Part shown: piece by piece, positions 30,955 to 61,694 of the stretch
How the letters are laid out: each line of letters starts with the position of its first letter
How positions within the stretch are numbered: the stretch's first letter is position 1
Source: Ascidiella aspersa
Taxonomy: Eukaryota
DNA: 64,000 nucleotides
NCBI GenBank assembly: GCA_963924565.1
Contig: OZ004612.1
Coordinates: forward strand, 28,706,001-28,770,000
Direction: 5' to 3'
The notes under the pieces: model-generated
What the model was told of the DNA's origin: nothing
Database searches by the model: none
Seen by the model: the letters and a program-made list of their open reading frames with translations, nothing else
Position numbers and translations under genes: made by a program

Positions 30955-33900
30955 ATGGCAAAGGCATTGTGGATTGGTTTGTTGATGACAGGTAAGGATG
31001 TACGCTTTAAGACTTAAAATAAACTTGTACAGTACACGGGTGCGGGTTTATTTTTGAAGTGTACGTTTGTTTGTTGAAATTTACTTATTAAATCTTTTTC
31101 ACGAAAAGAGAAAGGAGTAGAGCCGGCCAAGGATTTAAGTTTTGTGGCATTTCTTATTGCGTAGCAACATGACGTCATCAACAATAGAAACAAGATTCAA
31201 ACTGTTAAAACGTGTTGCAGTGGTCTCGGGCTGTATTCGCCAAAAGCAAAAATATGAGTTTTATATATATGCAATGAAAGATACACACACAGTTATGTGT
31301 TCAAAAACTGTGATTTAGCCCTTCGGAAGCTGCTTTTTGACCAACTATTAAATCTTATGTATCATTAGTACACCGATAGCCATCGCAGACTCACGAAACC
31401 TGTCGATCAAAATATAACAAGCAAGGCAGGCTAGGAAAACAACTAGCCTGCAGTGAGGTTCCAACTCACGATTTAAATATGCATATTTATTTGTTAACAG
31501 TTCAGGTGTTTTTTTGGTCAAGAAAACATATATGTCGATTAAAAAAGTTTCTTGATAGTTATGCCTGTATGACGGAACCCAAAGTACAGAATTTGTATCA
31601 GGAAGTCTCAAAATAGGCGCGTGAATAGCTGAAAATTACCGTACAGAAAACAACGCAAAAAAAAGTGATACTGAAAGTGCGAAAATGTATCGGGTAAATG
31701 TAAGTGAGGCAGATATGTGCCCACGAACACGCCCGAAAAGTAGCCACAAAACTAATTCTCATATCATGTGGAAGTTAAAATGCAATGAATATGTCTTAGT
31801 AACAGAAAACTTTCAGCTAATAATACCGCAAATTAGTTAGTCATTTGTTAGTAAACTTGATAGTTTTGGAGGATTCACATTAAAAACTTCTAAGAGATAT
31901 AAACGACGGTCCGCGTCAGCTGACGTTTATCAAACCCTTAACCGTGCTATGTACCTTAACCGTTAAAATCATTGCGAATTCTTGTATTTCCTGTTAGGTG
32001 GATTTTTGCTCGTTCGAGGTTCGCCCCTTTGCGAAAAGATGGGAACAGATAGAACTGGGTTGATCCACTTTGACAGCCGTTTGAACAACGGCACCAATGA
32101 GAGCATGTCGTGCCAGTGGAGCCTCAACACAAATACGAGCCAATTCGTGCTCTCTTTGAAGCTGATAGATCTGCGAACTTCTGGTCGAAACTTATCCTTC
32201 GTAACTCCCGACGGTAAGCGTTGTATTATTGTTTTTGTTAATATTTCTGTGGCAAGCAAAGTGGCAAAACTGCACAGTTTCGCTTTAGTAATTCGTTGTA
32301 AGCATATAGCTGTTTTCAACGTATATTTAACGAATTTTTTTGGCTGCCTTAAAGTCGATATGTGCCCACAAAAAGCCTCCAATAACGTTATTTTTAGTCA
32401 GCACTTCGATACAATAAGAAGCTTCAAATCATATAATTCCTGTCCACATAGCTCACCAGCAAAGTAAAGTTAAAATAATATACAAATTTCTGCGTTTTAT
32501 ATAGTAGGCTATAGTTAAGTTGCTATAGCCTACTACTACGAAACAAACATTGGCAAAATTAGAATCATTTATATTTTTGATGTAAAATGGATAATTAACG
32601 TGGACGAATAAATATACGGGTCTCTGTGATATTTACCTATTTAATCCGATACCAGTTATTTTGACCAAAAAAACAACAACAGTAGTTTACAGGTATTTTT
32701 TATATTCTTAGGTGATTAATGTATTGAGGTTTAGCTATCTCTATTGTGTACTATTTTGCGATTAATTTACTTTGTAAGGTTACAATTGCTGCCCTAGAAC
32801 GCAAACCATGGCCCTTACCACCCTCGATACCGCCGATACCACAGTATCGGACGAGTATCGATATTATCACGTGGCATCGGCATTGGCTCTGCCCCGATAT
32901 CATCGGACATCTATCTCAGTAACCCTAACATTGTAACCCTACCAAAACCTTGTTTTAGGAACGGTTGTTAAATCGGATGGAGGCGGCAGTCCGTCAGCCT
33001 CCAACGAACAATGGTGCGGACTTTACGTGAAGAAAAACGACGGAAACGAAACTACCTGTGGATCTTCGGTCGAGTATCCCGACATTTGCGCCAACTCCAT
33101 AACCAACATCAGCCAAACCTGGCCTCCTATCATTACCATTAAAGCGCAAGGAAACGTGAGCACAGTTGACACCACAGCTGGCCAAAACGACACCGGTTAC
33201 CCCGTGACTATCGTTCTGTACACATTCTTTATGTGTCCAGGCAACAAGGTAACCCCCAACAAGGTATCCCCCAACATAACGATGTTAAGTACAACTACGC
33301 AGACCAGTACAACTACACCACTCAGTTCGACTACTGCTGCAACTACAACTACTACAGGTATGACCACAACAACAACAAAGAATAAAGCGACTGAGCCGGG
33401 TAACACGTATTACAGAAGCGCAATAAAAATTGATTGAATGCCGAATTGCTTTTGGCAATCTATTTTTAAAAAATATGCGAATCGTTTTCTAGCAGGATTC
33501 AGTTTTATAGAAAGGGGGAATTTGTTTAAAAGACTCGCTATGGACGAATGTGCTTTATCAAATTAGTGAAATTCTTCGTTAGTTTAGGGTTTATGTTCCC
33601 TATCGTGTTATATATTCTTTTTTTTACTTATACTGCAACTGGTATATCAATAGGTATTTATTACCAATAGAAATGATACATGGGGTCGCTAAACAAGCTA
33701 TATGGTAGAATAGAAGCCATAATTATAACACTATCGTACTATACTTTTCAGTTACATCAGCACCTACGACCCTCGCCGTTTTTCTGCTAGCTGCGTCATT
33801 GGCGTTTGCGGTTTGCTTTGGATTGTGCAGCTGCACGTTTGTGTTCCTCTTCACTAAATCCAGGTACGGTTGCCAATAAATAAAGACAGGTTAAAAAGTG

Positions 33901-39579: not shown

Positions 39580-39622
39580 TTCTAGAGACTGGGGGTTACT
39601 TAAACGCAGTTTACAACTCACA

Positions 39623-42600
39623 ATGTTTTTCCAGCTATTTGCAAGGACGTTGTGGATACTAATTTGTGGTGAGTACATTTAATATGAAGAGGCAGAGATA
39701 ACATGGCATGAATCTAGTCAAACCTAGTTACATAGAAAGCGGCGTAAACACATGCGTGGTCTCCAGTTTTCTGTTTTTAATGCAGAACTTCCAGTGTCGG
39801 CATCTCTGTCGTGGTCCAGAATTTCTTTGTATTTGCTTATATCAATCATGATACAATGCATTCTGATGATGGCAAACTATTAGTTTATTAAAAGCTGTAA
39901 TTGTTTCTGTGTACATTCGTTGCGGTAAAATACTGAGTTAAACGAAGCTAACAATGAGCGTGTTTTATTGTAATGTTGTAGTAATCAACGCCTTATGGTC
40001 GACCACTATAGTTTAAGAACAAAAATAAAACTTTTCTTTATGACCTAGTTTAGCGTCATCGGTACAGTGGCAAACTGTGAGTTATTATTGGCAATATTTT
40101 ACCATGATTTTTCCTGTTAGGCATGACATCAATGGAAGTTCTTGCTGGGTGTCCGACAGCAACCAAGAACAGAACATTTGGATTCGTATTGTATTATTTT
40201 GGAGGTACTTCTTCGACTAACCAGGAGACATGTGACTGGGAATTCAAAACCACAAGAAGCGACGTCGTATTTTCCATGCAACTTAGTTACTACTACGGGG
40301 ATGCTGTTGTCCATACATTTGCAGCACCAGACGGTTAGTTTGCTATATGCAAAACGGAACGTAAACGAATTATGGCCGGTTCGCCGGATCCCCCCCAAAA
40401 CACGTTATTTTTTCACCGGTGTATGTCGAAAAAATGAAACGTATCAGAAAATTCAAACTGATGTTGTAGTTAGTTGCGTGTTATTTTTCTTCGTAGAGCC
40501 ATATAGTCGACGTTTGTAGAGCCATACGATTGTTTAGCTCCCCGCAAATGCTTTATCGCACGGGCAAATGTATTCAACGAAAGAGCCATTTGCAGAAAAT
40601 ACAAGCACCAGAGAGAGCTTCGAAATTATTTCAATAAAAAACGGTAAATAATGTTAGTCACAATAATATTCACGGTAATAACAAAATAACACGCATAATA
40701 TTTATTAATTTCAGTCTTTTGTTAACTAACTCTTCGGATTCTATGTCTAGTGTTACGTCATAAACGAAATGGTGGCCTAAATAAAGAAAATAAAAAGAGA
40801 GAAACGTTCATAAACGATACACTTGGTGGCCGTAACAGTTTTTTTTTTTAATTCTACGATTCGAATGGAAGAGCCACAAAAAACATGCCCGGCGAGCCGC
40901 ACTTTGCCCACCCCTGGTTTATCACCTTCTGCCGAATGTATACATTTATAACGTGAGATTTCAGTTGCATATTTGGCATGGAGCAATAGCCTCAGATTTT
41001 CGAAACTTTTTTTTTGGCCGTCCCAATTTTACGACGTACCTCTGTGACGTGTCTTAAGAAAATTTAATGCGTTAAATGTTTCCATTTTCCGGTAAGAAAA
41101 TTATGGTAGTTGTTTTCACATATCACACAAACTTAAAATAACGCTTATTGACTTACTTTACAGGCAAGCAAATATTTTCCAAACGGTATGCGGGTTGGAG
41201 TGAAGGTTGGTGCGGAAGTTACGTCAAAAGGAACTCAGGAAACGAGACGACTTGTAAAGCTATAAAGTATCCAACTATGTGCAAAAATATAAGCACAGTG
41301 AGCTTGACTTGGCCGCCACAAATTAGGACAATGGTTACAGCGGATTACACCAACAGCTACAAGAGGATTAAAATAGTTTATGCATTTCTGGAATGTCCTA
41401 CACGTAACACCAACAGCATTACAACAGCTAAGTCGCCAACTGGTTTTGACACTCAAGGTAAATGTATTAATTAACTAATTTTTTTTTCTTTCTAAATCTA
41501 GAAACATTTGCATGTTTTTTTAACTGCTTTCTACCTTTAGACACAACAACTGTCGAAACCAACATGAAGCACAGCAGCATAAACCCGACAGACATAGGTG
41601 AGCTAACCTCGGGTGGGTAACAAAAACTGCATTTACGATAAGGCACCACTTGGTTTACACATGCTAAAATGGTTTCTATCCATTAATCACAAGCTGAATT
41701 TTTTTTTTACTAGTACGAAGGTCGAAAGTGGATCATAAGTAACTGTTGGTATGTACGTCGTTATATGGTACGGAACGCCTAGATTACAATTATACCATAG
41801 CGGGCGGAAAGTTTCACTCTCGAGAGTGCTACCAAAAATTCTTTTGGACGAAAAGTATCGCGATCCCACCGATATGACGAAATTAATATGCTCAAACAAG
41901 CAATATAGATTAAATTAAATTGTCCAAAGTATGCTTTTTCTGGTTATTAGGGTAAAATTTTCTTTAATTTTAGTTTTTTTCTTTTAGTTTAGTTAGTTAC
42001 CTACAGTTGTTAACGGATTATCATTATTTGATGAATTTGTGTTACAAGATAAAAATCGCTTGTTGGATCGCAAGTCATGGATGAAATATCCATACTTAAT
42101 TGGTATCGCATCGGCACCAATGCCACCCTAGTACCCGACGAGTACAAATACCACCATTTGGTATCGGGTATCGGCTCCGATCCAATATTATCGGACATCC
42201 CTAATAGTGCTGCTTACTTTCACACCAAATGCGACTAATTCCAAGAAAGGCGCGCCTTTCTATATCCAGACTTTTACGTGAAACTTGGAAGGCGGGGTAA
42301 CCTGTGTAAGTAATCCCGATCAAATATATACAAAAAGTCGGTAGAAATCTGTATTTATTTTTTAGACACCCCATCTACTACGAACAGCCGAAGTAACAAG
42401 GATTCGTCAGCTATAATAATCGGTACAACGCTTGGAGTTTTGATCATTTTTACTCTTGGTTTTATAGCTGTGGGAGCAGTAAAATACAAGTAGGTATAAG
42501 AGCAAAATATAAACATAGGCAAAATCAAAACATATCCTCTTATCCTCGGTCTTATAGCCATATATTTTAACAGAGTTTTGATAACGTTTGACTTACCGCG

Positions 42601-43946
42601 AAAGAAAAACTTTAGTATGTAAAAATAGGCACATGATTACTAAGGTAAAGAACTCTATAGGCCAGACACGGGTAAACTAATACGGCTCGCGACCCGCATG
42701 TGACATGTATTTTTTGGCTCATTTGGGTAAAGAGTAAAACAAAAATAAAATAAGAGAGGTGCACTAATATATATATATATATATATAAATATATTTAAAG
42801 TATGTTTCTTTTATTAATATATTTTATTGTGACACATATAGAGTATTTTCCCATGGAACCCTGTGATGTAACATTATATATAGTGTTGTTGCTTCAAAGA
42901 ACCAATTCACAACGATATTCGGTTGATGCAATGACTTTTAAGGAAGTCTTTTTTTAAATCCTTAATATTCATTCGTTGTTACTATTTTAAAATTCTACCA
43001 TAGCCTTCACAGCCCACTAAACGTGATTGAACAATTAATAACTTAAATTCACTTCAAGCGGCTGATTAATCTCATAAATTTTAGAATGCGGATTGCGTGC
43101 TAAGAAACAATTACATAAAATATTTCTGACATAGGCTTTTAAGCAATTAGGCTATAGTAGAAGAGACCGTTTCTCTCTCTTAAAACATTTTTAAAATGAC
43201 TGCCAAAACCAACGTCTCACAGTTGGTAGAATTCAACAAACTAAACCAGTGTTTCGTAACCTTTTTCAATTTAGGGCTCAACCAAAGACATTTTAAAAAG
43301 TTGCCGCGCAGAACGAAGCGAGCTCGAATTTTGTTTGAGTACACCAGTATTTCCTTAAATTGCTTGCATATTTTTTCATTACATAGGTTTGATAGTTACA
43401 TGTCTTAAGAGTACTGCGGAATCAATGAACTAAGCCGAATAGAAATGAATATATGTTTAATATATCAAAATTGTTTTTCGTTTGCCCGCGGTGCACATGA
43501 CAACATTCCATGGCGCACCGGTAATTAAGCGCTGAACTGAACTATGAGATAGCAATGTGTGTACAACGAAAGCTATCGCAGACTCACCTAATCTCTCGAG
43601 CAATGATGCGCAAATGATACATAAGCCAAAATCGTTGGGCAAAAAGAAGCTTCAGAAAGGCTAGATCACAATTGTTAACACACATATGTGTGTGCATCTT
43701 TCATTAATTGCAATGTGTGTCTCGATTAGAAATCTCCAAAAAGAGTTGTTATCGGCCCAAAGGAGACTAACAAACGACCCAGCTGGACAGCCAAGTCCGG
43801 GTGATATGCGTACAACACCATCTACTACAGGAGCACAAAGCATGGAAGCTGAGCCAAGACGAGGAATGGTCGACAACGTACTTTATGGGTCTGCAAGTGC
43901 TTCAGGCGAACAACGGACCGTGTATAACGAACTGTACAAACTATGA
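39623..43946 (+). CDS. Receptor R2: same ectodomain family; tail with DNVLY and TVYNELY (316 aa)
   Basis: Exons 39623-39668, 40121-40333, 41164-41457, 41541-41597, 42366-42489, 43730-43946 total 951 nt in frame. Signal MFFQLFARTLWILICGMTSMEVLAG; TM IIIGTTLGVLIIFTLGFIAVGAV followed by KYK. The first exon and the small stalk exon are the least certain parts. Confidence 0.85.
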
Positions 43947-46014
43947 AATGTGACACTAACAGCTAGATATGAATTTTTTTACATTATCTTGATTAAGACG
44001 TTTCGAAAGAAACACACATTAACTAAAGATGAAACAAGGTCGTATCGAAACGTCATATTCAAGATAATGTCGATCTACTCGACCTTTTGGCTTTAAAATT
44101 CATTATCAAGCTACAACACAGATCCGTGCATAGTGTAGCTGACATCAAAAGCTTTTTTGATTTTGTTAATTTCGTTTTTAATTTTAAGAATCTGTTGTTT
44201 TTCTTGATCTTGTAAGTGAACTGTTTCAAATTTTTACTTTTTCAGTTTTTGTAGCTTAGTTTTATGTTCTTATTATCTTGTTGTTTTTCTTGGTTTTACT
44301 TGGTTAATTATTTCTTTGTCAACTATACGTTATCAGTGTTATTACAGTCTGTATAAGAGATAGAACAAATGGCAAAATGTGTTATTACCGACACGATAAA
44401 TGTTTCGTATATGTGTCAAGGCTGTCAATGTGTGACCACAAGGTTGCCCGCTGTTAAATATAAAATTTGTTTCATTATTTGTATTTTTTTAATATGTTCG
44501 ATAGAAAAGAGGTGACTGGAAAATTATGTTACATATTGCTTGATACATGCAATTTTAAACTAAATGTTGAGCACGACAATTACAGCGTTACTTCAGGCCA
44601 AATTACACCATTCTACATTGTTAGTTCGTTTGGGCCAAAAAAAGTAAAGTCGTGTTACGTGCTTAATTAGCACTACAAAATTATCACCGGTTGCTAATTA
44701 CGCCGACTGTAAATTCTAACATTCATTATTAATTTAGCGCCTTTGTTTTTAAATGTAGGGCTAGGAATTAGGTTTTCACATTTCGAGACATGTATAATTG
44801 TATATTAATGTAATATTCTTGTGCGCTGTGGTGTTCGCCGTTAATTGGACTTTAGACATGTTTTTTCCTGTCTCCAAACATTTCTGCAAATTTCACGATC
44901 ATTTATCGCTTGTTTTCCGGCGCGGTTTAACTTCTCACTAAAAGGTCCGCCCAATGTTATCTTTCCACGAAACGGCCGCCCTGTAAGGCGGGCCTGGGGT
45001 TTCCGGGAGCGCGTCGGTTCCCGTGGAAAGGAGTTTTGTTTTAGCGTATATTACGAGCGGCTGACCGCCTACAGCTCGATAGACGTCTGGGTGTAGCCTT
45101 GTGAAATTAGCGAGTAAAACTTTAAGTTTCATTATGCTCTGTCTGTCGCTTTTGTAAGTAATTGTGTGTGTCCAAGTGTCATTATTGTTTGTGGTGTGGT
45201 AATATTCTACTCTTGCAACCAATACATCTGTACATTGGGTTTTCTTGTTGTGGTCTTTAATATAAGTTCTCTTTGGTAGGTTATTTATTGCCCGAAAATA
45301 AGGACTCACAGCGACTTTACAGGAGGCCTAGGTAATTTTCTAGAATTACTAGTAAAGTCGTAACAGTCGTGTATTACCAAAAATGACAGAACACAAATCT
45401 CTTGTAAACCAGGAACTGAAACAATTAGCATGTTTTAAGATTTCATAACAGGATCTTAGTCAGACCGCGTACCATTGAGCTATACGCGGAACTGCCGAAT
45501 ACACAAGTTTAAAATAAACGCAAGTTATTTTAAACATGAATAGCCTGTCACTCCATTTCTTGCTCACTCCCACGAAGCGCGAAAAAAATTCCCTTTATTC
45601 GGTTAAATAGACAACATTTTAATTTAGTACAAGACGCGACGCATTGATTGGAAAAATGCACATTTTTCATTTTTTCAGCGTTTATCTTGTTTCAAAAGTG
45701 TTACTAATAAAACAATGGCCTTAAGGCCTGAGTCGGAACCAGCAATAATCCATAACTAAACCAAACGAAATCGAGATATTTTAAAAACTAAGTGCAACAT
45801 GAACGTAAGGGCCACATAACACTGGGTAAAGAGCCGCATGTGGCTCGCGAGCAGTAGTCAACGTCAAATCAAAGCCCTCAAAATGTTTTGAGGTCACGAC
45901 AAACGACTAAAATAACCCGTGGTCGTTTTTCGGTTTCACATTATTCGGCTAAATGACAAAATCACATGTGGTGGTATATGCTTTCCCTATAACTTCCTAC
46001 ATTAGGGTCTAAAG

Positions 46015-46449: not shown

Positions 46450-46793
46450 GTCTAAAGCGAGTTGTGTAGGACTTGTGCTGTTCAAAAAACCCACATAAAG
46501 AAGCGAGACAGTTTTTGAATACGTGTGTTTATATAGTACACTTCTTGATTACAATTAAATCTTTATCGCATTGCTCGTCGCCGCACACTGCCATTAACTA
46601 TTTTTTCCCCTCATTGTTATTACCTTATATCGCACTATTATTGGCAATTCGTTGCTATGGCGGAAAAAGAATTCAAGCAAATTTGTTTTACGCTAAACAT
46701 ACAGAACATTTTTTTATACGAAATAAATTGTAAAAAAGATTCATGTAAAATCAAACAAAAGGTAAAGGTTGTGTGTAGTCAAACACATTATAG

Positions 46794-47263: not shown

Positions 47264-48232
47264 CGTTATAGCGAATATCTGTTCCAAACAAAAAAATCTA
47301 GGTTCGTTTAAAATAGCTTTACACGGCCCGCGAGTTTAGAAGCGCTGCTATAACGGATTTCCTTTATTGGACAAAGTTGAGCGAAGGAGCAAAGCCAAGC
47401 CAGCCATTTGTAAACCAACAGTTTACCGGTCATTTTAGAGCTATAAACAGTGATGGATTCAAACAGGCACAGTAATCTAGACCAGTGATCAATAAACTTG
47501 TTTCATAAAATGCCGTATAAATATAAGGCCTTACGAAGTCAAATTATTAAAAGTATTCACGACCGCGGGCTGGAAATAAATATTTGTGTCGAAGTTTATT
47601 AACCTAATGCTCGTTAAACCAGGGACAATAAATAACTATTTAACAAAATTGTAGTGCGAGAATTAAGCGAACTTAACGATTAGATAACGATTACAGCAAC
47701 AGTATTCTACAAATCGGGATGTTGGCCTTCGAAAAGATATTTTATGAAAACGTACAGTTGTTTGACTCATTGGGACACTTTATATGGTTACATAAATATC
47801 TATATTTTATAAAACAAAACCTTACATTCTTTAACATGTGACCCAGAAATTTTAAATATGATTCTATATTCTTTGACAGAAGAGTGTTTTAAAAGTAGAC
47901 TCTCGAAAGTTCGTTTCTCTTTTTCGCTTAAGTCGTTTGTGTTTTCGAGAGATCTTGTTGACTTAAAATAAAACTTCGTTACACCCGTCATTTCAATACT
48001 TGGTTTCCGACTTGTTGAACGCGGGCGTGATGTTGCAAATCAACTCCCAACTATTAAAGCAATAGCGATATATGGCACGACTTTACTTAGTTGTGCTCTG
48101 AATCACTGAACTTAGCCGGAAGCCTCCGACAGAAAAAACGAATCAGTCGATCAAGATGCAAGCAAGGCCAGTCAAGAAAAACAACTAGCCTGAAATGAGG
48201 TTGAAACGCACGAACTTCGGGCACCTTAGCTC

Positions 48233-48607
48233 TAGAGATCGACCGATATCGATAATATACCTGAAATATACCCGATACCTGAAATACCGATACCCGATAC
48301 CGATACCCGATTTTTTACATTTTGGAACCGATACCCGATACCGATTTTTTACATTTTGGAACCGATACCCGATACCGATTTTTATATACCCTATTAAACT
48401 ATTATTTTACATATTAACTTGACCTGATGCTAAAACCAAATTTTTTTAATAAAAAAATTGATAAGTTGTTTGTTGTACAGGAAAAACGATATCATATTTT
48501 GGTACTAAAAATATAAGTACCGGCCTACATTTACCTATACCGATATATCGGTAAAAGCCAACTATCGGCCGATATTATCGGTAAACCGATATATCGGTCT
48601 ATCTCTA
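48233..48607. mobile_element. MITE with internal CCGATAC repeats (relatives near 32820-32925, 42080-42205, 60460-60565)
   Basis: TIR TAGAGATCGACCGATAT / ATATCGGTCTATCTCTA with tandem CCGATAC(C) units. Confidence 0.75.
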
Positions 48608-48623
48608 CTTTAATCAAGTATAG

Positions 48624-49059
48624 CAGGGACGGCGAACCTTTTTATCGCTGGGGTCACAAACACGCATTACTCCTTACAAAATGCGCAAGTGGGTCATATA
48701 TTTAATTATTTGCTAATTGTGTGCGAAACACTGCTGTGCGGTATTTTAAGTGTTATTGCCTGGGTTGGTAATTCAAGGTTATTGACTGATTTCCAAATTC
48801 TGATTCCCATGTATATTAAGAAGCTAAATAGTTAACAAATGCTGCAGATTTTTTTATGGGATTACAGGAGTTCAGAAGAAAGCTTTTCAGCACGATTTAT
48901 TGGCTAAACCTGGGTTTTAGGAACTTTTAGTCTGCGAACTCTTAATTTCCCTTAAAGCGGTGGTCGGCAAACTTTTTGCGTCGCGAAAAGACAAGTGGGT
49001 CATTAAAAATCTGTGGTGGGTCACTTTGTGACCCGCGGGATAGTGGTTCGCTATCCCTG
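48624..49059. mobile_element. hAT-type MITE
   Basis: TIR CAGGGACGGCGAACC / GGTTCGCTATCCCTG, TSD AAGTATAG/AAGTATGG (7/8 match). Confidence 0.78.
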
Positions 49060-49725
49060 AAGTATGGACTGTGTTCCAAAATTATGCAAACGTGACAAAA
49101 ATAACCCCCAAAACAAGTGATTTCTTGAGCCCTGATTCTTCTGGTTTACACTAAGTCATAAAGCGACGTTTCGGCAGCAGTTATCAATCCATCTATTTAT
49201 AAAAAAAATATAAGCAATATATTTTACGTGTTAAAATAATAGAGAAAAGGCACTGCAAATATTTAAAAAATATACTTCACGTCTCTTCAGTGAGGATACG
49301 TGATTTCGGTTGTTGTGGTTATAACTGGACAAATTTACCTAAAATATTTAACCGTGCCACTATACGTGATCACAGTCTGTATAAGAGATAGAACAAAAGG
49401 TAAAATCTGTTCTTACCGAAACGGTAAATGTTTCGTATATGTCAAGGCTGTATACTTCACGTCTCTTCAGTGCGGAAGGCTGTTTGCTACAACGTTGGGC
49501 AATGATTCAAGTTACAAAACATGTACTTACTCACGGTGGATGTTGTTAGTCAGCGCTTAGGGGTTTTAAACGCACACTGCGTTCGTAATTGTGCGCAAAC
49601 GCCTTCGTCACTTGAATGTCATGGTAAAATTACGACCGCACACTGACATACCTTATACTGGTTGTTAGGATTGTATTTAAAAGAGAAGGACTGCTGTTGA
49701 TGAAGATTTTCTGATAAGCTACTAA

Positions 49726-52700
49726 ATGCATTGGTTCAAGTTTCACTTTGTTTTGCTGAACTTTTTAGTGCTGAATACCGTTCTGTACCTGACGTGCGCT
49801 GTCGGCTGCCAGGTTGAATTTTCAAGTAAATCTGGAACGATTGCCTATGGAAGAAGCTTCCGCAGTTGTAAACAAAAGTGTAGCTGGATATTTTCCTACA
49901 ATAGTAGTGGAGAAGTTGCTTTTCGACTAAAGTTTCTTCTTAGTGAGGGGAATGCAAAACGAGACGAATCGGTCACTTTACCAGACGGTGAGTATTTTGG
50001 TAATTCACACTTTGACATCAGGGATTTATATAAAAATACGATTTTTTTTCAGTAAGACAGGATCAGTGCAATAGTTTCTTGGAAATATAGTGACATGTGA
50101 ATGGGGTATTCTGAAGAAAACAATATGATTTTGCGTTTGATTTATCTAAATGGATTTAAATACAGTAAGGGTTGCATTCGGGTAGAATGGAATATTTCAT
50201 AAGCTGTAAACAGCCTATATAAAAGTCTCACGTATAACTTTAATCATTGCTTCTATGATGATTCATTTGTCCATCATCATTAAACAAATCGTTTGTAGCA
50301 TCTTTTGCGATAACAATCCATATCTACCCTATACATATGCCGAAACTTGGCTGGTTTAATTCTTGGTTAGTTGCAGAAATATACAGCTATTGTTTCGGGT
50401 AGGTTCGGTTTTGCCGGAAAAAACGATCAACAGCACTTCGAAGTGGTGTGCCGTGTACGTAAAAGCACCGGGCAGTCAAAATACTTCTTGCGTTGAGAAT
50501 GTGACAATCGCCAACATATGCGACCAAGCCACAGTGCGCAGTCAACAATGGCCACCGACCATTACAACTCATGTTTGGTCTTACACAATGCAAGTGGACT
50601 ACGATTTTGTCGACTGTAAAGCTTGGACAACAACCACAACGGCCAATGAAACACATACCGCGTCAACAACAAGAACAACGAAGGTGGCGACAAATCAGAC
50701 TGTCTTATACGAAACAACAGGTGAAGTATTAATAAAAATTAACGCGGTGTAGCAATAGTAGAGCTTCCTAAACATTTTAGTCTGCAAACCCTTTTACTTT
50801 GTAATAACTATTCGCAACCCTTCGAACTATGATAACATATTATTTCATAATTTCTAGTTTCACGCGTATTTGTTGAGTTCTGTGCAACTCAGTTGTCAAT
50901 TGAGTTTTATTGGTTTAGAAATTTGCATAACGAAAATTAAAAAAAGCCCAACTCATTTATGTTTAGATGTAACATTCGTTTCTTTTGATATGAATTACTC
51001 GCAATTCATCAAGCTCATTGCGCGATCCTAGTCTAGGAAGCCCTATAGCCTGTACAATTTCGCAAGTTACATACGACGCATCAACCAGTTATTCGCGGTT
51101 CTTATGTTCACTTTGTTCTCGTTTATAGGATTCACAATGGTCGATTACGTTTGCTATAGTCGCCGATTCTCGTATAGGTTCCCATTTAAATTCTTATGCT
51201 TTTCTATAATAAATATAGACAATAGAGACTGTGACAGCGCAATTGCAATTGATATGTTTTAACAAATCCCCGTTGCAAATAAAATGTTGCGTTATGCAAG
51301 CTGCATACTATTGTTGGCTGTAGTGTTACATTTACTGTAACTGGGCTATTTGCTTAAAGCAGGACGTTTGTCTAGTCAAAAGTGATTTATAGGCACCGAA
51401 CTTTTAAAATTCCAGGGCGTTATTTTCCAGAATCTAGACAGTGCAAAATTACTTATATATAAATAAGATAAAAAATGTGAGCTCTTAGATAGCAGCTGTT
51501 TCATGTTATTACTGTAGTTTGTAGATTTTATGAACTCTTGCCTATAATTGGTAATAGTAAAATGAAATATTCTGTGTCTAACTGTCCAGCCATCCCACAA
51601 TATGTCTATATACCTACATGAAGTGATCTTTATCAATAATACTGTTTTTAACCGGTCGAGTCGAGCATTAGCACAATGATTAATCGTTTTTTTAACACCA
51701 GGATTCTTTAGCGCTGAGGTTACTACGTCAAGGAATTCCCCGAGAAACAGATCGAAAGTGGTTGCACAAGAAACCGTTGGACGAAACCTGACAGCGGTGT
51801 CTGTTGTGTTGGCTGTGCTGTTACTCATCGCACTCTTGGCCTTTTTGGCTGTTCTTTTTAAGTACAGGTACAAACCTATGTGTCGCCATAATACTTCCAT
51901 CTGGTTAACTTTGACGTAGAAATCTCATACTAATTTATGACTTGGTTACCTTGAGATAAACTGTAAGGACTGGCGATACCATTTCGGATAACTAATATGA
52001 TTGAAGATTGCTGATCTACAATTTCGTGACGAAATTTATTGACTTGATTTGTAGAATTATACGAATTAAAACTTAAAAAGCAATGCGAAAATGTGTTGTG
52101 AGTTTTCAAATCGTCCCGTATAGTTTAAATTTTCATCAAAGTTTAGTTTAAACCCGACAAACTTTGTAACAAAACTGCGTGTTTTATAGTTTTTAGATAT
52201 CTGTATTTAGAAAATATACCCTGGACCGGAAAAACTTACTTCGCGGACCTTAGTTTCCAATGATAAGAACGTTATTCGTTTTCTAACTGTATACATATCA
52301 GATGTACCACAGTAACAAACAAACTTCTAATTCCAAATGTAAAATTGTTCTTCCAGCAAAATTTGTTAAATTACTAATGTTTCGACCACCACCTATTCGG
52401 GCTTTCTAAATATCTGTATTTAGAAAATATACCCTGGACCGGAAAAACTTACTTCGCGGACCTTAGTTTCCAATGATAAGAACGTTATTCGTTTTCTAAC
52501 TGTATACATATCAGATGTACCACAGTAACAAACAAACTTCTAATTCCAAATGTAAAATTGTTCTTCCAGCAAAATTTGTTAAATTACTAATGTTTCGACC
52601 ACCACCTATTCGGGCAATCTTCTTCGGTGCAATAAAATTGCAACTCCAGGCAAAAAAGAACAATGCCTAGCAGCATCAGCTTGTAAACAATGTTTCACAG

Positions 52701-53048
52701 CAAAAACTAATTTCAGTTAGGAATAAGTTTTATCCTACATAGAAAATTATTACAACTTGTTTATTGTTTAGAACATTGCAATCAAGAATGGCGAAGAATT
52801 CTGAGAAAAGCCATGCATCAGTCTACGGAAACGACCCTTCATCCGACAACAACATGTACGCAATGGCCACGGCTCCTTCACAAGCGACTAACTCAGTAGC
52901 AAATGGGGAACGAGAAATGGTGGACAACGAACTTTACACCGCCAACGATGTGCGTGAAGAAAAACAGACTGTCTACAACGAACTTTACGCAGCCAACAAT
53001 GTTTTGGAAGAAAAACAGACTGTGTACAACGAACTATACAAAGCTTAG
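49726..53048 (+). CDS. Receptor R3: same family; tail with three NELY repeats (340 aa)
   Basis: Exons 49726-49987, 50403-50720, 51702-51867, 52772-53048 total 1023 nt in frame. Signal MHWFKFHFVLLNFLVLNTVLYLTCAVG; TM LTAVSVVLAVLLLIALLAFLAVLF followed by KYR. Confidence 0.9.
52197..52615. repeat. 206-bp tandem duplication (period 213) in R3 intron 3
   Basis: 52197-52402 is repeated, apparently identically, at 52410-52615. Confidence 0.9.
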
Positions 53049-54512
53049 TTTGCTTGTTTAAATGACATATTCTCAGAACCATAGTGTTCCGTTTAATTTT
53101 TTACCACGTGCCTAAACTATTGTGTTGGGCAAACGACAACGTCCCCAAAGGAGCCATGTGGCCACATATTATGAACTTTACTGAAGTAAACATTGGGTAG
53201 TGAAAGTATTATATCTAAACATCCTTGCAAAATAGTTTTGGTTTGGCTCCAGGAGACATTGGCGTCAGCAGCTTGTTAAAAAATATTTTTTACTTGTTTT
53301 CCTGCTCACTTGGAAATGTATTATAGGTGCAAAAAAGTTCGCCAATTTGTGGAAACAAAAATCACTTAGCGGGAGCACTGTTCAGCACAGCGCACTTGAG
53401 GTCAAAACTTGAAAAAAGAGTGTGTTATTTATTTGTCTTGCTTGTTCATATTTCACTGCTAAATATTTTCGTCCTTATTTTTCCCTTCGCAAACGATATA
53501 CAAAGCTTCCGAAATGAAATCCAGCATAATCATTTCAATACCGCCCACATAAATGGTTCCATACACCACCATTGATTTTAAAGTTTGTATAGAAAGCCAA
53601 TTAACAAATCTTTGGTTGAAATTGCGCAAATTTGTTTGAGCGCGTAATGAAATTGTGTACGTGTTTATAAAATAACGGAATAAAATGTGATAATGTGCCT
53701 ATGGTGGTCCAAAGTTTGAAACAAAATAAGATTGACTTTCATTTGATGATATATTTTGCATAATAATTACAACGTTCCAGCCGATACAAAAATCTATAAA
53801 AACTCTATATACATCGATTTTCGACTTACTGTAACTTTAACGCACTAAATCATGGTGAACTTTTGTTTTAAAGGGGTTTACCTAAATGTTGTAAACAAGT
53901 CAATTTAAAATGACTTAAATCCGAGTCAAATCATGGCAATAAAATGTACGGTCAGATCAAGTCATTTACCTAAATAAAATGTTGAATTATATATTGAAAA
54001 TGTAAACTAGTAACATCCTGAGAGATATTTTGATTAACGAATTGTAACAAACACGTAACAATTACTTAATTCGAAATCAAACTCCTTAACAAGAAAAACT
54101 GGAATAAAAAGACTAAACGAATTTTCTCAAAATTATTTTAAAGCTTTTAAGTCTAAGTAAAATTGATTGCCTCAAAATTGATTTGCGTCAAGTCAAGTCA
54201 TTAAAACGTCAGCACACAATAATATCAAACAAAGGGAACTATAAATACCGTTAACTATTTAAATCCAAGCATTGGAGAAACAAATGGAAGCCTTCTATGG
54301 ATAAGCATTAGACACATGACGTAGTTTAACAGGTTTACATGCGTGATACGTGCATAGTTGCGCGGGTCACTTTATTGTTTGTGTGTAGTAGCTATACCAG
54401 GAAATACTGTCACCAAGCGTTGTTAGCTGTAGACAATAACAAGCGGGTACAACACTGTTTGGCTGTTTTTTTTGTGGACGACTAAATTCGCCGAAGTGTG
54501 ATCAAAGCGGGA

Positions 54513-56356
54513 ATGATTGGTCTCAAGTGGAAAAACGTTTTTCTGAGCTTTCTATTACTGGAAACTGTTTATCAAAGCGTTGTCGGTTGCAAACATGAAT
54601 TCTCTAGTCGATTCGGAAAAATATCTTACAAGGCAGATTATTCATGGCAGAAATGCGACTGGAAATTTACTTACAATGGAAGCAGAAGTGATGTTGTTTT
54701 GGGAATAAAGATTAAGAACATTTGGCTACACAGTGACGAAATAATTACTTTGCCAGACGGTGAGTATGCCAATGTTTTAAATTCTTCCAGTTAATTTGTA
54801 ATCGGACTTTTAAGTTACTCATTTTTTTTTATTTAAATTCAATATTGCATATTACGTTTGCCAACTTAAACATTCGCAAAGTGTGTAAAACTAATGGTTA
54901 GTAGCAGTCCTAAAAATAAATATAGGGTCCGTGAGGTAATCATTTGTTTTAAAAAAGGGTGCTGAAATTAAAACAGGTTGTTAATCACTTGTCTTCGCGT
55001 CTTAGCTCTAAATTACTCATGCAAAAATATCTGAACATTTATTCCATTAAAACCCTAAGCAAATTCAACAAGTGTTTTTATTAAAAGGGAAAGCTATTTC
55101 AACTCGTCTCTGGATTGCTCAATATTGTGGAGTGTTTGTGAAAGAGTTTGGATTACAAGAATCGTGCAACGATGGAGTAAAGTATCCTATAATTTGTGAC
55201 AAGCCGAGCGTTTACAGCAAATCGTGGCCACCCAACATTACAACTAAACTGTATTCTCATGAAATGGAATTAGTTTACGGTTTTTTCGACTGCACAAATA
55301 TTACCACAACCACAACTACAACAACAACAACAGCAAAGGCTACAACAAGGACGTCAACGACAAAAACAGCAACTACAACAAAATCCTCCACAGCAACAAC
55401 GAGAAAAAACGATGTGGAAACGACAACAACAGCGTTTTCAATAGGTAAAAAAATTACAATATTTCTTTGTTGCTTGTACAGTAATGTTTATTTTTTTATT
55501 TCGGCTTTTTGAATGGAAAAACTAGACAAAAAACAAGCTATTTGTTACTTTAATATATTTCCAGGAGTTTTAAGCTCTGAAGTTACTAGGCCAGATACTT
55601 CCCAAAGAAACAACTTTAAGTTTGCGGCGCAAGAAGAAATTGCACGAAATATGACAGTAACAAGCGGTATATTGGCTGCATTACTGCTCATTTCTGTTTG
55701 TGCCTTGGTAGCGGCCTTCATTAAATACAGGTAAATATTTATCCAGCAGTTTTTATGAGGCATGGATAAATTAATTTCATTAAAAAAAAATTAAAAATGT
55801 TGGACACATTTTCCTCCATGGCCTCATTTATTACATAGTCTAATAGAAAATAAGGCCAAAAGAATAGTACATAAACAAATATGCTGTGTATCGTTTTGAT
55901 CTTATCCGATCTTAATCTACAAATATTGTTCAAAGAATATTTACGTAGTAAGAATATCAAATCCCATACAGAAGTAGGTATTATTTTAAATGTTTCGAAT
56001 AACTTTTTATTTATATACAACATGAACTACGTATAAGAACATGAATCAGGAGTTATTCAAAACGGTCACAATGATACCCAAATAGTCCGTCATTCCTACA
56101 AAGTGTATGGGCTTTAATATTCATACTATGTCTTACTACAACCTCCAACCATTATGCTCCAAACCTACATTTGTTTAGAAACTTGAGCAAACAACCGACA
56201 ACGAACGGAAACAACGTTAACGCAATGGTGACAGGTCCTTCGCAAGCAACTTATTCTACGGCATACGGGGAAAGGGAAATGGTCGACAACGAACTTTACG
56301 CAACAAGCAATGCTGGAGAGAAACAGACTGTTTACAACGAGCTTTACACGGCTTAG
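54513..56356 (+). CDS. Receptor R4: same family; tail with DNELY and TVYNELY (315 aa)
   Basis: Exons 54513-54759, 55088-55444, 55565-55730, 56179-56356 total 948 nt in frame. Signal MIGLKWKNVFLSFLLLETVYQSVVG; long Thr stalk; TM VTSGILAALLLISVCALVAAFI followed by KYR. Confidence 0.9.
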
Positions 56357-58057
56357 ATCGCTTGTTTTTATAACACCGATGTGGTATAGGAAAAAGAGTT
56401 ATGAACTGAACAACGCCGGCTTGTAAAAATATATGTGTCATCTTCAGAAATTTTGCGGAGTCGGAAGCTTTTTTGGTTTATGGGCGTAAAAAACATACAA
56501 AGTTTTAATTGTATTTTTAGGAATTTTTCGGCATCTAGTTAAAAAAAATCACTCAAAACGTGCTAAAAGACACCAAAGATACATATAATTTCGCGAAAAC
56601 AAATGCTATTATTCCCAGTCCAATATAGGTAAAAAATATTGTTAGGTAAGGATCCATAGCCACGTACTACTGTAGATTTATCTGCAGACCAGATTATTTT
56701 CATTAAAAGAGTCATAGATATGGAAGTCGCCTAACCTTACACAAATGGCCACAGTAATGTGTAATCTATTATGGAAACTCGATTTTCTTCCACTTTAGTT
56801 CCATTTTATGTATTTTTACTGTGATTCTCTTTTCTACGCCTTTTAAATTGTTTTTAGTTCGCAGTTATGTTGCTGTATAAATATATAAAATCATAAATAT
56901 TGAACTGTTTAAATATTGAGTTAGTGTTTTCCATATATATATATATTAGTGTTTTCCATAATAAGGTGTATTACATTGTTATCATAATCCAGGAATGTTA
57001 AAGTCCGGGACAGTAAAAAAATAAAGTCTTACACTTTTTCCGTTGGTGTGGTAAATCTAAACAAAGATCCTACCAAGGTTGCTGGTACGAAAAGCGCCTT
57101 TATGAGAGATGTCATATCAGGTCAGATAAGTTATAATATCATGTCAATGGAAAATAAATGTATTGCAAATTGCAAATAGCCGTGTAAAATTTGAATGGCT
57201 TTATATGATTTCACCAGCCGCAAATACATTCCAATCAAAAAGCAAATGGAAATCATAAGTGCAAACGATACTTTCAATCCTATTGTTTCGCATTGCATAC
57301 CAAGTGCGGTATTGCAATTGCGGGTAGACAATAAGGAAGTAAGTGTAGTTGGCAGAACTATATTTCGCAATCAATTAAGGACTTTGTTGTGGCTGATATT
57401 GAGCCACATGACGATGACTTCAAGATCTGACACATCTGACAATTCAAAACGTCAGATAGATTAGCATAATGGTTACCGTGACGTTTGGCCTGTGTGTCAA
57501 CGAAATATGCGTGGGCGATTTTAAGTGGCTATACGTATTAAACCGCTGGCTATACATAGATGTGCCACTGCCACATTGGTATTAGACGGGACTACAGCAA
57601 AAATACAGAAATCAGAATAACATGAACGTCGAATCAAAACCAAATCCTAAATAAGAAAACAACGGAAAGGCAAGAAGGACCGTGGTTCTTGAAGTAAAAT
57701 AGCCCGTCATTCCGACAAACATGCAAGGTTAATCAGCCAATAAAATTGGATTAGCTATTTTCTTTCTTTTCAAAATAAAGCACATAAAGACAATATTTAC
57801 TACAACAACTAATGCAAAAGTAACAGCACGAAAACTAATAAACGTTTTGACAACCAGTATTTATAAATCGAAAAAATCGAAAACAACTTTAAATTGTCCT
57901 GGAAGAAGTACAGCACAAAGCTTAACTAAATAACAAAAACCGTTGGGTCGTTGCAGGAAACAAATAAGGAATGTGAAGTTATTTATCTGTTAAGAGGATG
58001 CTTACAACAAAATAAAGGGAAACAACCAGAAAACCATTATATAACAGTACTTGTGGC

Positions 58058-58558
58058 CAGGGCTGGGGAGCCACCGTAAAATAGCATTAGCTCCGGCTCC
58101 AGCTCCGGAGCCATCAGGCAATTATTAAATGGCTCCGGCTCCAGCTCCGGAGTAGTAAAACTCATATCCTTTGGCTCCGGCTCCAGCTCCGGAGCCATCA
58201 AACACACACCCAATGACTCCGGCTCCAGCTCCGGTGCCACCAGTCACTTATTCAATGGCAAGTTTTAAAAATTGCTTTTGTCTCACTAACGTTGGAGATG
58301 GAACAAAATATAATTTCTTAGCTTTAACACCACAAATTGAAAAATGGCTCCAGCTACACAAAAATAATAAAAAGGGCTCCAGCTCCGGCTCCAGCTCCGG
58401 CTCCAGCTCCACAAAAATAATAAAAATGGCTCCGGCTCCGGCTCCAGCTCCACAAAAATAATAACAATGGCTCCGGCTCCGGCTCCGGCTCCGGCTCCAG
58501 AGAAAATGCTTAGCTCCGGGCTCCGGGCTCCAGCTCCGGCTCCGGCTCCCCAGCCCTG
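58058..58558. mobile_element. Young hAT-type MITE filled with (GGCTCC/AGCTCC)n
   Basis: Perfect 15-bp TIR CAGGGCTGGGGAGCC and perfect 8-bp TSD CTTGTGGC (58050-58057, 58559-58566). Confidence 0.92.
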
Positions 58559-59655
58559 CTTGTGGCAGGACTTGGTAAAACGCGGCGGAAGGCACAGATT
58601 TCATATTCGAATTATTTTTACAAATTTGGATTGGTTTAATCACACAAATTATTTTCTTTGCAGATTCTTATTTCGTCAAAATTGACATAAGCTAATCTTC
58701 CATTATAATTGCTTATCGCAAATTGCCGTGATTATGAGCAATGTGTATATCAGCTAACTTAACAAATTAAGATCACCATCGCTAGAAAGTTATTGAAATA
58801 GGCCAAAATATTTTTAAAGGGTGCTCAGGTTTTGTACGAAAGCTCAGGTTTTGTACGACTAACGACTGTCGTCTTATTGAAAAATATGACCTATTCTACC
58901 AAGTGCAGTTACGCGTCTGCCACGCTTTCTATTCAAAATATTTGGATATGGTTATTTCCATAATTAAAGTAACATTACTTGATTTCAGCGTGAAAGGATT
59001 TGGTAAACTATTTAAAAAAATTGCCAATGAAAAAATATATTTGCAATGAAAACGCGGAAGAGTTGTGCCCAATAATACTGTAGGTTTTTAATCGACTAAG
59101 ACTTCTATATCGATTACAAAACTGGGAATAGAAAAAAATGCATTTGGTTTTCAAACGATAGTTTATTTCTTCTTATTGTATGGGATATGCATATGTTTTG
59201 GGATTTTATGAAGTCGTTAAAGGTACAATTCGTCAGATAGAGCGACATATACGCTACACGGAAGAGACTGACTGGCTTTAGCCTTGCAAAGTACGTGAAT
59301 CTGCAAACGAAAATGAGTCAACCTATTTAATCGTTAGTAGCAGTGTATAATTGGAAACGTCATATTGTTTTACCAATATCCTGAAACCACAATCGCCGGA
59401 GCAGCTACAATGGCGTCAGTTTGAAAAAGAAAAAGCCGAACGTAGTAAGAATATCAAAGCCTACACAGAAGTAATGTGCTACCTGCCTCTACTTCTATGT
59501 GGGCTTTGATATTCTTAGTACGTCTTACTACAATCTCCAGCTATTATGCTCCAAAAAGCCTACACTGTTTTGTAGTTGTACTTGTTAACGGTTTTGTAGA
59601 TTTACTTGTTTAGCTTTGTAGGATTTTTTTTGTGTAACTAAAGTGCTAATTCCTG

Positions 59656-61694
59656 ATGAGTTTGCTCAACCTGAAAACCGTTTTGTTGAATCTTGTGTTG
59701 CTGGACACAGCTTATCACCAGGCATGTGCCGCTGCCAGCCGCAAAACTCTTTCCAGTAGATTTGGACTGATTACATACAGTACATATAGGAATGGTTGGA
59801 AGACGTGCGATTGGATATTTAATTACAACGACAGCAGTAACGATGTTGTATTGGGAATAAAGTTTCAGAAGAGCTCAAGGCTTTACAACACCCAATCAGT
59901 TACACTCCCAGACGGTAAGGATGATGCTTATTGGTATATACCGCTACAGTATGGCTTTTAATTTTCATGCATTTTTTTCGTTTCAAATATAAACCGTAAA
60001 GCATACTCGTTCGAGCCGTTGAAACATCAACCGTTTATTAGAAAAAATGATTATATATACCAAATTAAAGTGAATTTATTTGTATTTATCACAGGTACGA
60101 TTCTAACTCGTAACACCCTCAGTTCAAGATTTCCTTGGTGTGAAGCGTACGTGAAAAAATCGGGTTCATGCCTTAAGAACGTAACCTACCCAAGCATTTG
60201 CGACAAAGCAGCGGTTTCCATAGAAACTTGGCCGCCAAAGATTACTACTAAAATGTACTACTACTCAACTAGGCGGCACCACTACTCAATGGAAGTAGCA
60301 TACAGCTTTTTTGACTGCTCGAAAAGCACCACTGCAACAACCACAACAACAAGAAAACTAACAACGTCTACCACCTTGAAGTCAACACCTACAGAGAATG
60401 TCAAGAAACCAACAGGTTGGAAAAATACGTAACGGCGTTATTTAAAAGAATGTTGCAGACAGGGATGTCCGATAGTATCGGATCGGACACGATGTCCATG
60501 CACATAGTGATATCGGTACCCGTCCGATATTAGTGTGGTATCGGTGCCGATCCGATACCAAATTACCATAGAAATTTAAACCATGATTTGCGAGGTAACG
60601 AAGTTATTTCTACATTTAGAGGTAAATTTATAAAAAAATGGTATGCAAACGACTAAACTTCTTAACGCTTAACCACATTTTCACCCAATAACCTAAAAAA
60701 ATCGATTGAATGTTTTAATTTTATTTATTAGAAAACAACTCCAAAAATGCACAAGAATCAATTGGGCGAAGTATGTCAGTGGCGACTGGTGTTCTTGCTA
60801 CACTACTGCTCATCGCTGTTGGTGCTTCTGTAGTGGTGGCCGTCAAGTACAGGTACAAACCGTATTCCCGACCAGGCAATCCTGAACGGACCTGGTTCAT
60901 TGACTCTAAATCTGTCGTAATTCAGATAGTAATTAATAAAAATTGGGTTAGATCGATTTTGGGGGGCTACGGACGTGGCGCACTTGGTGTAAAGTATTGC
61001 GGAGACCAAACACGATTGGGTGACCGATAATTATGATTTTGTAATATTTACGAATAACTTTTTAATGAATAGTGTAACAACTCTTAACTCCACAACTTAC
61101 GATTGTTTTGCTGTGTTGTTTTTTGGTACGGAATTAAGGGGGTTCGTCAGATTCAGATTCAGATTCAATTTATTTTTGTGCATGTTTGCAAACATCGAAA
61201 AAAACAAAATAACATAAATAATAACACAAGGACAGCGAAAGGACCATTCGGTCATCGAGTCGAGCTGCCCCTCAAAAATAAATAAATTTAGTGGCAATAT
61301 TGAAAGTTACAATCATTGGAAACAAAAAGTGCGTAGATAAAAAGTATGTAGATTTTAACGGTTTTATATAAATTTTTGAAATAAGAAATGGATACGAAAA
61401 AGCAATGTAAAACTAGCAAAAAACGATAAGGTCAGAAGGTACTATACAACGGTTACGTACTGCAGGATTTATTATCGTCAAGAGATGGAAACTAAAATTA
61501 AAACTATACAATTAATTATATTCTTCAGAAAATTGAAGCTAAGAAATCCCGCAAACAACCAACCAGCAGCCAACGGAAACGGCCGTTCAGTCGACTACAA
61601 TGTGTACACAATGGCCACAGCTCCTTCGCAATCGAATAATCCAGCAGCAAATGGGCAACGAGAAATGGTAGACAACGAACTGTACACAATGTAG
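59656..61694 (+). CDS. Receptor R5: same family; tail with VYTM and a single DNELYTM* (288 aa)
   Basis: Exons 59656-59914, 60095-60415, 60732-60852, 61529-61694 total 867 nt in frame. Signal MSLLNLKTVLLNLVLLDTAYHQACAA; TM VATGVLATLLLIAVGASVVVAV followed by KYR. Confidence 0.9.
61147..61400 (-). mobile_element. 3' end of a CR1/L2-type LINE or its SINE partner
   Basis: The minus strand reads a stem-loop GGGGCAGC...GCTGTCCT, then AATAAA and a (TGAATC)n microsatellite tail. The upstream boundary is approximate. Confidence 0.55.

Follow-up and report, generated by a model that had tools for sequence, protein, structure and literature searches.

A tandem family of ascidian type I receptors whose ectodomain is probably a rebuilt CUB domain

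Introduction

The stretch of Ascidiella aspersa DNA analysed here (the window: 64,000 nucleotides, positions 28,706,001-28,770,000 of contig OZ004612.1, called C6 below) is AT-rich and eukaryotic in character, with a GC fraction of 0.34-0.40. Five genes on the + strand, R1-R5, span positions 31,982 to about 61,700 of the window, and each encodes an ectodomain of about 140 residues on two exons. The question raised by this locus is which fold that ectodomain has. An earlier note, made from the letters alone, had proposed a CUB fold remodelled around a new Cys-containing insert, and the results presented here support this CUB reading. The ectodomain is most likely a heavily rebuilt CUB fold that lies below the reach of standard domain searches. 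We consider it probable that R1-R5 are tunicate-restricted, tandemly expanded type I receptors whose ectodomain descended from CUB.

Results

Conserved motifs of the family

Translations of the two ectodomain exons were aligned separately, exon 1 in 13 rows (the five window genes and eight paralogues) and exon 2 in 15 rows, and both alignments confirmed that the motifs listed in the earlier note are shared by the five genes. In exon 1, every row has DG and both the Cys and the Trp of C-x-W, and at least 90 % of the rows have the first Cys, the Gly of G-x-I and the Pro of PDG. Some paralogues begin with C-G-G or C-G-E, like canonical CUBs. Two peculiarities that had been pointed out in single genes were seen again in the exon-1 alignment, namely a Ser at the first Cys of R5 and an extra Cys in R3, which lies four residues before C-S-W.

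The second exon had been described as carrying a conserved block, YVK...C...WPP, and a terminal F-x-x-C, and here all 15 rows agreed in the V of YVK, in the two Cys of the insert, in WPP and in the F and C of the terminal motif. The Cys of WCG was retained in at least 90 % of rows, and the motif itself varies (WCA in R3, WCE in R5 and YCG in R4). The insert that follows WCG is 20-25 residues long and contains the two invariant Cys, and at least one N-x-S/T sequon was counted by hand within it in 12 of the 15 rows. The domain ends in a hairpin and an invariant Cys. Length variation is found mostly before C-x-W, in the linker from DG to WCG, between the Cys of the insert and within the terminal hairpin, and sequence entropy is also high downstream of the V-x-L-x-I strand.

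Profile comparison with CUB

In hhalign comparisons, the exon-1 alignment of the family (A1) matched a profile of 15 canonical CUB pieces from the same genome (A6) over 58 columns, covering CUB columns 1-64, with a probability of 89.5 % and an E-value of 2e-6. The match rose to 95.6 % (E 1.1e-8) against exon 1 of the neighbouring CUB receptors described below, and was 93.5 % against exon 1 of one of them, L038, alone. Reversed-profile controls gave at most 0.9 %, and none of 100 column shuffles reached the observed score (maximum 18.2 versus 35.7, and 15.1 versus 44.7). The alignments place the first Cys, G-x-I, C-x-W, V-x-L-x-F and DG in the same register as the parallels drawn in the earlier note, and the N-terminal part, corresponding to CUB columns 1-64, is homologous to CUB at the profile level. 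Whole-domain alignments of the family with checked register (A5 and A9) matched CUB columns 1-84 over 79 columns (68.7-68.8 %, E 4.5e-5). This alignment crosses DG, reaches WCG and ends there, at the place that the earlier note had given to the insert.

Predicted structures

Structures were predicted for two homologues from the ascidian Clavelina lepadiformis, P0001 and P0010, and not for the window proteins, using four full-length rows and the exon pieces of the window and of other loci as separate rows. The P0001 model has an all-beta ectodomain, with a predicted local distance difference test (pLDDT) score of about 61-89 in 10-residue blocks over residues 31-170. In the P0010 model, block pLDDT is about 80-94 (residues 31-150), and nine strands are accompanied by a single short helix (117-120), which lies between the two Cys of the insert. 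When compared by VIA-align with 48,161 chains (50 rows per model), both models had a CUB domain as their best structural match, and rows 1-19 for P0001 were all CUB chains. The canonical CUB domains (PF00431) concerned include those of spermadhesin PSP-I (1spp), TSG-6 (2wno), neuropilin a2 and C1s/MASP CUB2. In these alignments, the matched part of the models begins at about residue 22 and extends to 165-169, and single-domain CUB chains are covered almost completely (1spp_A 7-113 of 109 residues; 2wno_A 131-249); the structural scores are middling. The predicted fold is a jelly-roll beta sandwich, and among solved structures it superposes best on CUB domains. A protein-language-model search with the P0010 ectodomain also returned mostly CUB clusters as neighbours (score 0.85), a link that we treat as a lead only.

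Canonical CUB receptors beside the family

Searching the genome with PF00431, whose gathering cut-off is 21.4 bits, put CUB exon hits beside the clusters of family genes. Exon 1 of the genes at L038, L039 and L040 (C6 28.42-28.47 Mb) scored 39-42 bits on this model, and also gave sub-threshold matches to the Pfam model CDCP1_CUB_6 of up to 24.1 bits against a 27-bit cut-off. These genes have the same layout as the family: exon 1, a phase-1 intron in the Gly codon of x-DG, exon 2, a Ser/Thr-rich stalk, a transmembrane segment and a [MV]VDNxLY tail. Their donor falls in the same Gly codon and in the same phase as that of the family, and all 12 donors read in the two groups have the form G/GT[AG]AG after GA[CT], GAA or CAT. 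In 4 of 4 readable cases, canonical CUB genes from other parts of the genome are instead split by a phase-0 intron some four codons upstream, after C-x-YD[YF]-x-[EA]; the phase-1 Gly-codon intron thus seems, by gene reading, to be common only to the family and its neighbours.

Exon 2 of the neighbours opens with x-C-G and then carries two or three Cys within about 20-24 extra residues, so that, as in the family, a Cys-bearing insert stands directly after CG; a Ser/Thr-rich frame and then a transmembrane frame lie downstream. In L038, moreover, the last strand is followed at once by a Cys (YYVVNC), comparable to the Y-x-F-x-x-C of the family. Unlike the family, the neighbours pass as CUB in Pfam, keep the third Cys and retain the canonical F-x-SD...GF end (64 % over 19 columns in the alignment with the CUB end); SPNYP is kept in L039 and L040. 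L038-L040 are best read as less-derived relatives, in which the insert is already present while the canonical Cys, SPNYP and the C-terminal motif remain.

The tails point in the same direction. GMVDNRLY, QMVDNVLY or QVVDNVLY was found in three neighbour genes (L038 and both L040 genes), and MVDN[EV]LY in eight distinct genes of the family (R2-R5, L001, L002, L008/L009 and L015); no tail was found for the L039 genes in the DNA examined. Open frames from 20 control loci, 82,312 residues in all, gave one loose match. By BLASTP against the L038 tail, the R3 tail matched at the seven-residue motif only (E 0.021), and the R2 tail gave no match. The Clavelina homologues terminate in [IV][DS]NVLY. The [MV]VDNxLY motif, which occurs in the family (window 43665-61694 and the loci named above) and in the neighbouring canonical CUB receptors alike, may be a docking site that the whole clade has conserved.

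An unrooted tree of the N-terminal halves (31 rows), which by its nature gives no direction of descent, places the family and the Clavelina proteins on one side of a branch with 99/98 support. The neighbours fall with the canonical CUBs, L038 being the nearest row across the branch, and most inner forks are open. The tree omitted L009 (identical to L008), L023 (nearly identical to L022), L030, L031 and L033, the stop-containing rows L016, L017, L020 and L025, and L019 and L029, which consist of the C-terminal half only.

Two further canonical CUB exon-1 frames, nearly identical to each other and scoring 37.3 bits each on PF00431, sit between family members in the 29.79-29.85 Mb cluster (L036 1747-2244 and L037 2037-2546, both on the - strand). 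Each is near an Asn/Ala/Thr repeat frame (ATNAT...), and a frame downstream in L036 resembles a plain CUB C-terminal half with no insert.

Differences from canonical CUB

Like canonical CUB, the family has about 64 N-terminal columns in register (the first Cys pair, G-x-I, C-x-W-x-[IF], a hydrophobic strand and x-DG) and retains the Cys of [FW]-C-G. Unlike canonical CUB, it falls below every Pfam threshold, has lost the third Cys, which is the partner of the CG Cys, and has 20-25 extra residues with two Cys as well as a terminal Cys. In terms of the four canonical Cys positions, C1, C2 and C4 are retained, C3 is missing in 13 of 13 exon-1 rows, and three new conserved Cys positions appear; the full four-Cys set is therefore absent from the family. 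The columns aligned to the CUB sequence E...C-x-YD have an entropy of 2.2-3.3 bits, with the top residue in at most 35 % of the rows. Neither SPNYP nor the acidic Ca2+-site motifs, both of which the earlier note had reported as missing, were found in the family rows, and the 15-row exon-2 alignment contains no SD motif of the kind that precedes GF in canonical CUBs.

An excerpt of PMC8051872 describes the canonical CUB disulfides as linking L2-L3 and L5-L7, and the odd loops L3, L5, L7 and L9 as lying at one end, where they are the most variable and form the site for Ca2+ and ligand. The same excerpt assigns to the Ca2+-binding subset of CUBs conserved acidic residues on loops L5 and L9, and no such conserved residues were found in the family. 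By homology, four of the five variable segments of the family would correspond to L3, L5, L7 and L9, and it is therefore plausible, on sequence grounds, that the variable loops share one face. Since C3 is lost, the Cys of WCG would have to pair with a new Cys. The absence of C1 from R5, and of both C1 and C2 from the next gene, R6, fits a C1-C2 disulfide. R6 lies at L001, just past the window, and its exon 1 (L001 2043-2405, +) has a Ser at the first Cys position and an Arg at the Cys of C-x-W.

Size and range of the family

With the R3 exon-2 core as query, 19 matches at E <= 0.01 were obtained in the same genome, 17 of them on C6 and one each on contigs C1 and C7. The C6 matches cluster near 28.49, 28.74-28.78, 29.79-29.85 and 30.36 Mb, and the gene array extends past the window (loci L001 and L002). 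Against 1.84 billion representatives, the exon-2 profile had only 19 hits at E <= 0.001, seven of them at E <= 1e-10, which makes the family a narrow one. All named hits come from Clavelina lepadiformis, and the remainder are unnamed metagenome or Logan fragments. Four full-length homologues (P0001, P0010, P0019 and P0021) have the same architecture as the window genes and are recorded as uncharacterized proteins of that ascidian; no Pfam domain records exist for the database homologues. A further protein homologue search contributed only P0020 and P0021, and a search of the ESM Atlas with the R3 exon-2 piece gave no usable hit. Given the matches in the genome and the homologues in another species, the sharing of the motifs is far beyond chance.

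Signs of recent duplication were seen at two places. R5 and R6 are recent duplicates of uneven identity (window 59000-62000 versus L001 1423-4508): the upstream DNA and the ectodomain exons are 86.6-88.7 % identical, and the region of the transmembrane and tail exons is 97.9-98.6 % identical. This unevenness points to gene conversion in the 3' half or to a duplication of mosaic type. Positive selection was dropped as the cause of the R5/R6 differences, as the 5' non-coding DNA is equally divergent as the ectodomain exons. The second place is L008 and L009 (C6 29,785,700-29,797,800), where two genes of the family, separated by about 6.9 kb, do not differ in the translations of exon 1 and exon 2 or in their tail motifs; they point to a tandem duplication of very recent date.

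Layout of the window genes

In each of R1-R5, one open frame encodes the N-terminal half of the domain and a second encodes the C-terminal half followed by a Thr-rich stretch. A signal peptide ahead of the N-terminal half and a frame for the transmembrane segment were read in R3-R5, and a tail frame with MVDNxLY or TVYNELY motifs in R2-R5. All coordinates in this section are window-relative and on the + strand. In R1, the exon-1 half runs from the first Cys to PDG at 32021-32215, with the donor in the last Gly codon, and the exon-2 half (WCG, Cys insert, WPP, last strand and terminal Cys) is at 32982-33242, with an extra loop of about 20 residues preceding the last strand. The halves of R2 are at 40141-40335 and 41178-41402, and its tail frame, with MVDNVLY and TVYNELY, at 43686-43946.

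Exon 1 of R3 (49726-49987) contains the ATG, the signal peptide and the N-terminal half, the piece from the first Cys to PDG being at 49786-49989, and ends in phase 1 at ACG/GTGAGT, after the first base of the Gly codon. Exon 2 (50403-50720), whose acceptor tag/GT completes that codon, encodes the C-terminal half (to about 50617), the Thr-rich stalk and a phase-1 donor; the piece from before WCG to the last Cys is at 50414-50623. The frames for the transmembrane segment and for the cytoplasmic tail, which has MVDNELY and two TVYNELY motifs, are at 51758-51919 and 52764-53048. RNA reads of run X3 that map to R3 differ from the window at 51823, 51844, 51847, 52991, 53036 and 53593, with three reads each, and may derive from an allele or a paralogue.

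In R4, exon 1 (54513-54759; ATG, signal peptide, N-terminal half and phase-1 donor) has its piece from the first Cys to PDG at 54579-54761, and exon 2 (55088-55444; C-terminal half, Thr-rich stalk and phase-1 donor) has its piece from before WCG to the last Cys at 55093-55299. The R4 tail frame, with MVDNELY and TVYNELY, is at 56171-56356. Between R4 and R5, a block of simple repeats (58037-58685) has long PELEPE, APAPAP and SRSRS frames on both strands and is probably a microsatellite, not a gene. Exon 1 of R5 (59656-59914) holds the ATG, the signal peptide and the N-terminal half with Ser at the first-Cys position, the piece from that position to PDG being at 59716-59916; the exon-2 half of the domain is at 60106-60324 and the tail frame, with MVDNELY, at 61485-61694.

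In all five genes the Gly codon of PDG is interrupted by a phase-1 intron (GAC G/GTGAGT or similar). In R3 and R4, exon 1 ends in CCA GAC G/GTGAGT and exon 2 supplies, after AG, the two remaining bases of the Gly codon, as read in the DNA. The ectodomain therefore reads [TL]PDG, then 10-19 residues, then WCG, and the PDG...WCG joint that the earlier note had assumed fits these splice sites.

Discussion

Several results weigh against descent of the ectodomain from CUB. PF00431 and CUB-like models gave no hit at E <= 10 on eight exon frames of the window or on five database homologues, four of them full-length, and a six-frame PF00431 search of the genome, in which 150 of 584 candidates were scored, had no scored match inside the window. 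Hidden Markov model (HMM) searches of PDB chains gave nothing significant with A1 (PSP-I at E 1.4), no hits with the exon-2 alignment (A2), and four non-significant hits with A9, none of them CUB. With Foldseek, neither model had a match at E <= 0.001, and the top rows were GOLD and cupin domains. The modelled homologues share 20-55 % identity with the pieces from the window and the other loci, and no more than four rows of the alignment were full-length. Among 23 RNA reads over R3-R4, from one run of the same species of which about 6 % was read, none carried the exon 1-exon 2 joint, and their number was too small to confirm splicing. The one-face arrangement of the loops and the pairing of the disulfides are matters that we infer. 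Finally, the exon-2 profile had no similarity to canonical CUB, to exon 2 of the neighbours or to exon 2 of L038 (probability 0.1-0.2 %). The remodelled-CUB reading of the earlier note is nevertheless supported, by the profile match of the N-terminal half, its controls and the link through the paralogues, with the limit that the C-terminal half has no detectable sequence similarity to CUB.

The result for exon 2 favours an alternative in which only the exon-1 half comes from CUB, and exon 2 is an unrelated Cys-rich sequence, substituted or recruited, that by chance completes the beta sandwich. Similarity to CUB fades near the exon boundary, and exon 2, being phase-1 at both ends, is of the symmetric, exchangeable kind, both of which suit a chimera of this type. 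However, the hhalign alignment continues beyond the boundary to W-C-G with CUB-like spacing, and the VIA-align superpositions extend over nearly whole CUB chains. The Pfam-positive neighbours have a Cys insert at the same place and yet end in F-x-SD...GF, and the Cys that follows the last strand occurs in L038 too. We regard a chimeric origin as improbable.

A second alternative, that the domain is a generic jelly-roll sandwich unrelated to CUB and that the motif spacing is convergent, appears highly improbable. It is difficult to reconcile with an N-terminal profile match that is in register and has clean controls, with the run of CUB chains at the head of the structural matches to the P0001 model, and with an intron, a gene architecture and a tail motif that are common to the family and the adjacent Pfam-positive CUB receptors. 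The GOLD rows returned by Foldseek had E-values of 3.7e-3 to 4.2e-3, which are not significant, and in VIA-align GOLD stood below or level with the CUB rows. Proteins of the p24 type have a lumenal GOLD domain, a coiled coil, a transmembrane segment and a short tail. The family differs from this architecture in its mucin stalk and long tail with tyrosine motifs, and no Pfam hit to GOLD/EMP24 was obtained, and a GOLD/p24 identity was rejected. The remaining possibility, an ordinary canonical CUB that is merely hard to spot in the raw sequence, has in its favour the motif parallels and the paralogues that start C-G-G or C-G-E, but is already refuted by the silence of PF00431 on the family when set against its scores on exon 1 of the neighbours, in line with the absence of the third Cys, SPNYP, the acidic loop residues and the SD...GF end and with the roughly 20 extra residues after WCG, and its probability is negligible.

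The window genes follow the plan of a type I receptor, with signal peptide, one ectodomain of about 140 residues, Thr-rich stalk, transmembrane helix and a tail with tyrosine motifs. If the ectodomain is a rebuilt CUB, as we favour, its N-terminal two thirds would keep the CUB framework (first disulfide pair, G-x-I, C-x-W-x-F, V-x-L-x-F, x-I-x-L-P-D-G and W-C-G), and the rest would have been rebuilt, with loss of the Cys before the YD position and of the acidic Ca2+ ligands. The insert after the WCG strand, often N-glycosylated to judge from its sequons, would occupy loop L7 by homology, and a new terminal Cys would have been added after the last strand. The variable, indel-rich segments would be the odd loops L3, L5, L7 and L9 at the end of the sandwich that serves elsewhere as the ligand face, and ligand may be bound there without Ca2+, by an ectodomain presumably displayed on a mucin-like stalk. 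Signalling may occur through phosphorylation of the tail tyrosines, as YNEL fits YxxL-type motifs.

Among known proteins, the vertebrate receptors CDCP1 and DCBLD1/2 cross the membrane once and combine divergent CUB domains with a phosphotyrosine tail. Their likeness to the family is one of architecture (a CUB-type ectodomain, a single transmembrane segment and a tail that serves as a tyrosine-rich scaffold), and they differ in domain number and in having no mucin stalk; no CDCP1_CUB_6-type Pfam hit was obtained on the family itself in the eight window exon frames and five homologues. ADAMTS13 CUB2, a non-Ca2+ CUB, is set apart by its description, being a recognised CUB within a tandem pair in a secreted protease and having no two-Cys insert after the CG strand. 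In tunicates, the closest functional analogy is FcoR/Fester of Botryllus schlosseri. An excerpt of PMC12582321 presents these as clustered multigene type I receptors with divergent ectodomains, composed of Ig-like and Sushi domains, and with tail tyrosine motifs that include a YxxI/L/V core, a pattern which, as given there, the YNEL of the window tails fits. No Ig or Sushi domain was found in the family, either by Pfam or in the 50 VIA-align rows of each model, and a shared function is suggested by analogy only. In the excerpted text of a review of ascidian fertilization (PMC9265791), CUB is mentioned only in proteases and EBR1. Full-text literature searches, which do not extend to subscription journals, brought up no publication that describes such a CUB-like family of tunicate receptors.

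A tentative and, in our view, rather doubtful extension is that the genes are tunicate-specific receptors of an immune or allorecognition type. The Ca2+-dependent face of CUB would in that case have been replaced by a Ca2+-independent, glycan-shielded and disulfide-stapled surface formed by the L7 insert and hypervariable loops L3, L5 and L9, coupled to tails with YxxL motifs like those of immunoreceptor tyrosine-based inhibition and activation motifs (ITIM/ITAM) and diversified by tandem duplication. If this were true, the family would be a CUB-based counterpart of the Ig-based clusters of FcoR/KIR type in the sister group of the vertebrates.

Descent from CUB would in itself give a fold and a likely ligand face to ascidian proteins now recorded as uncharacterized. 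It would also mean that a widespread extracellular binding fold can diverge until domain databases no longer detect it, its core persisting nonetheless; the same chromosome holds intermediates in the form of canonical CUB receptors that already have the insert. For the origin of recognition receptors, it is relevant that the invertebrates most closely related to vertebrates have a tandem family of receptors whose tails carry tyrosine motifs.

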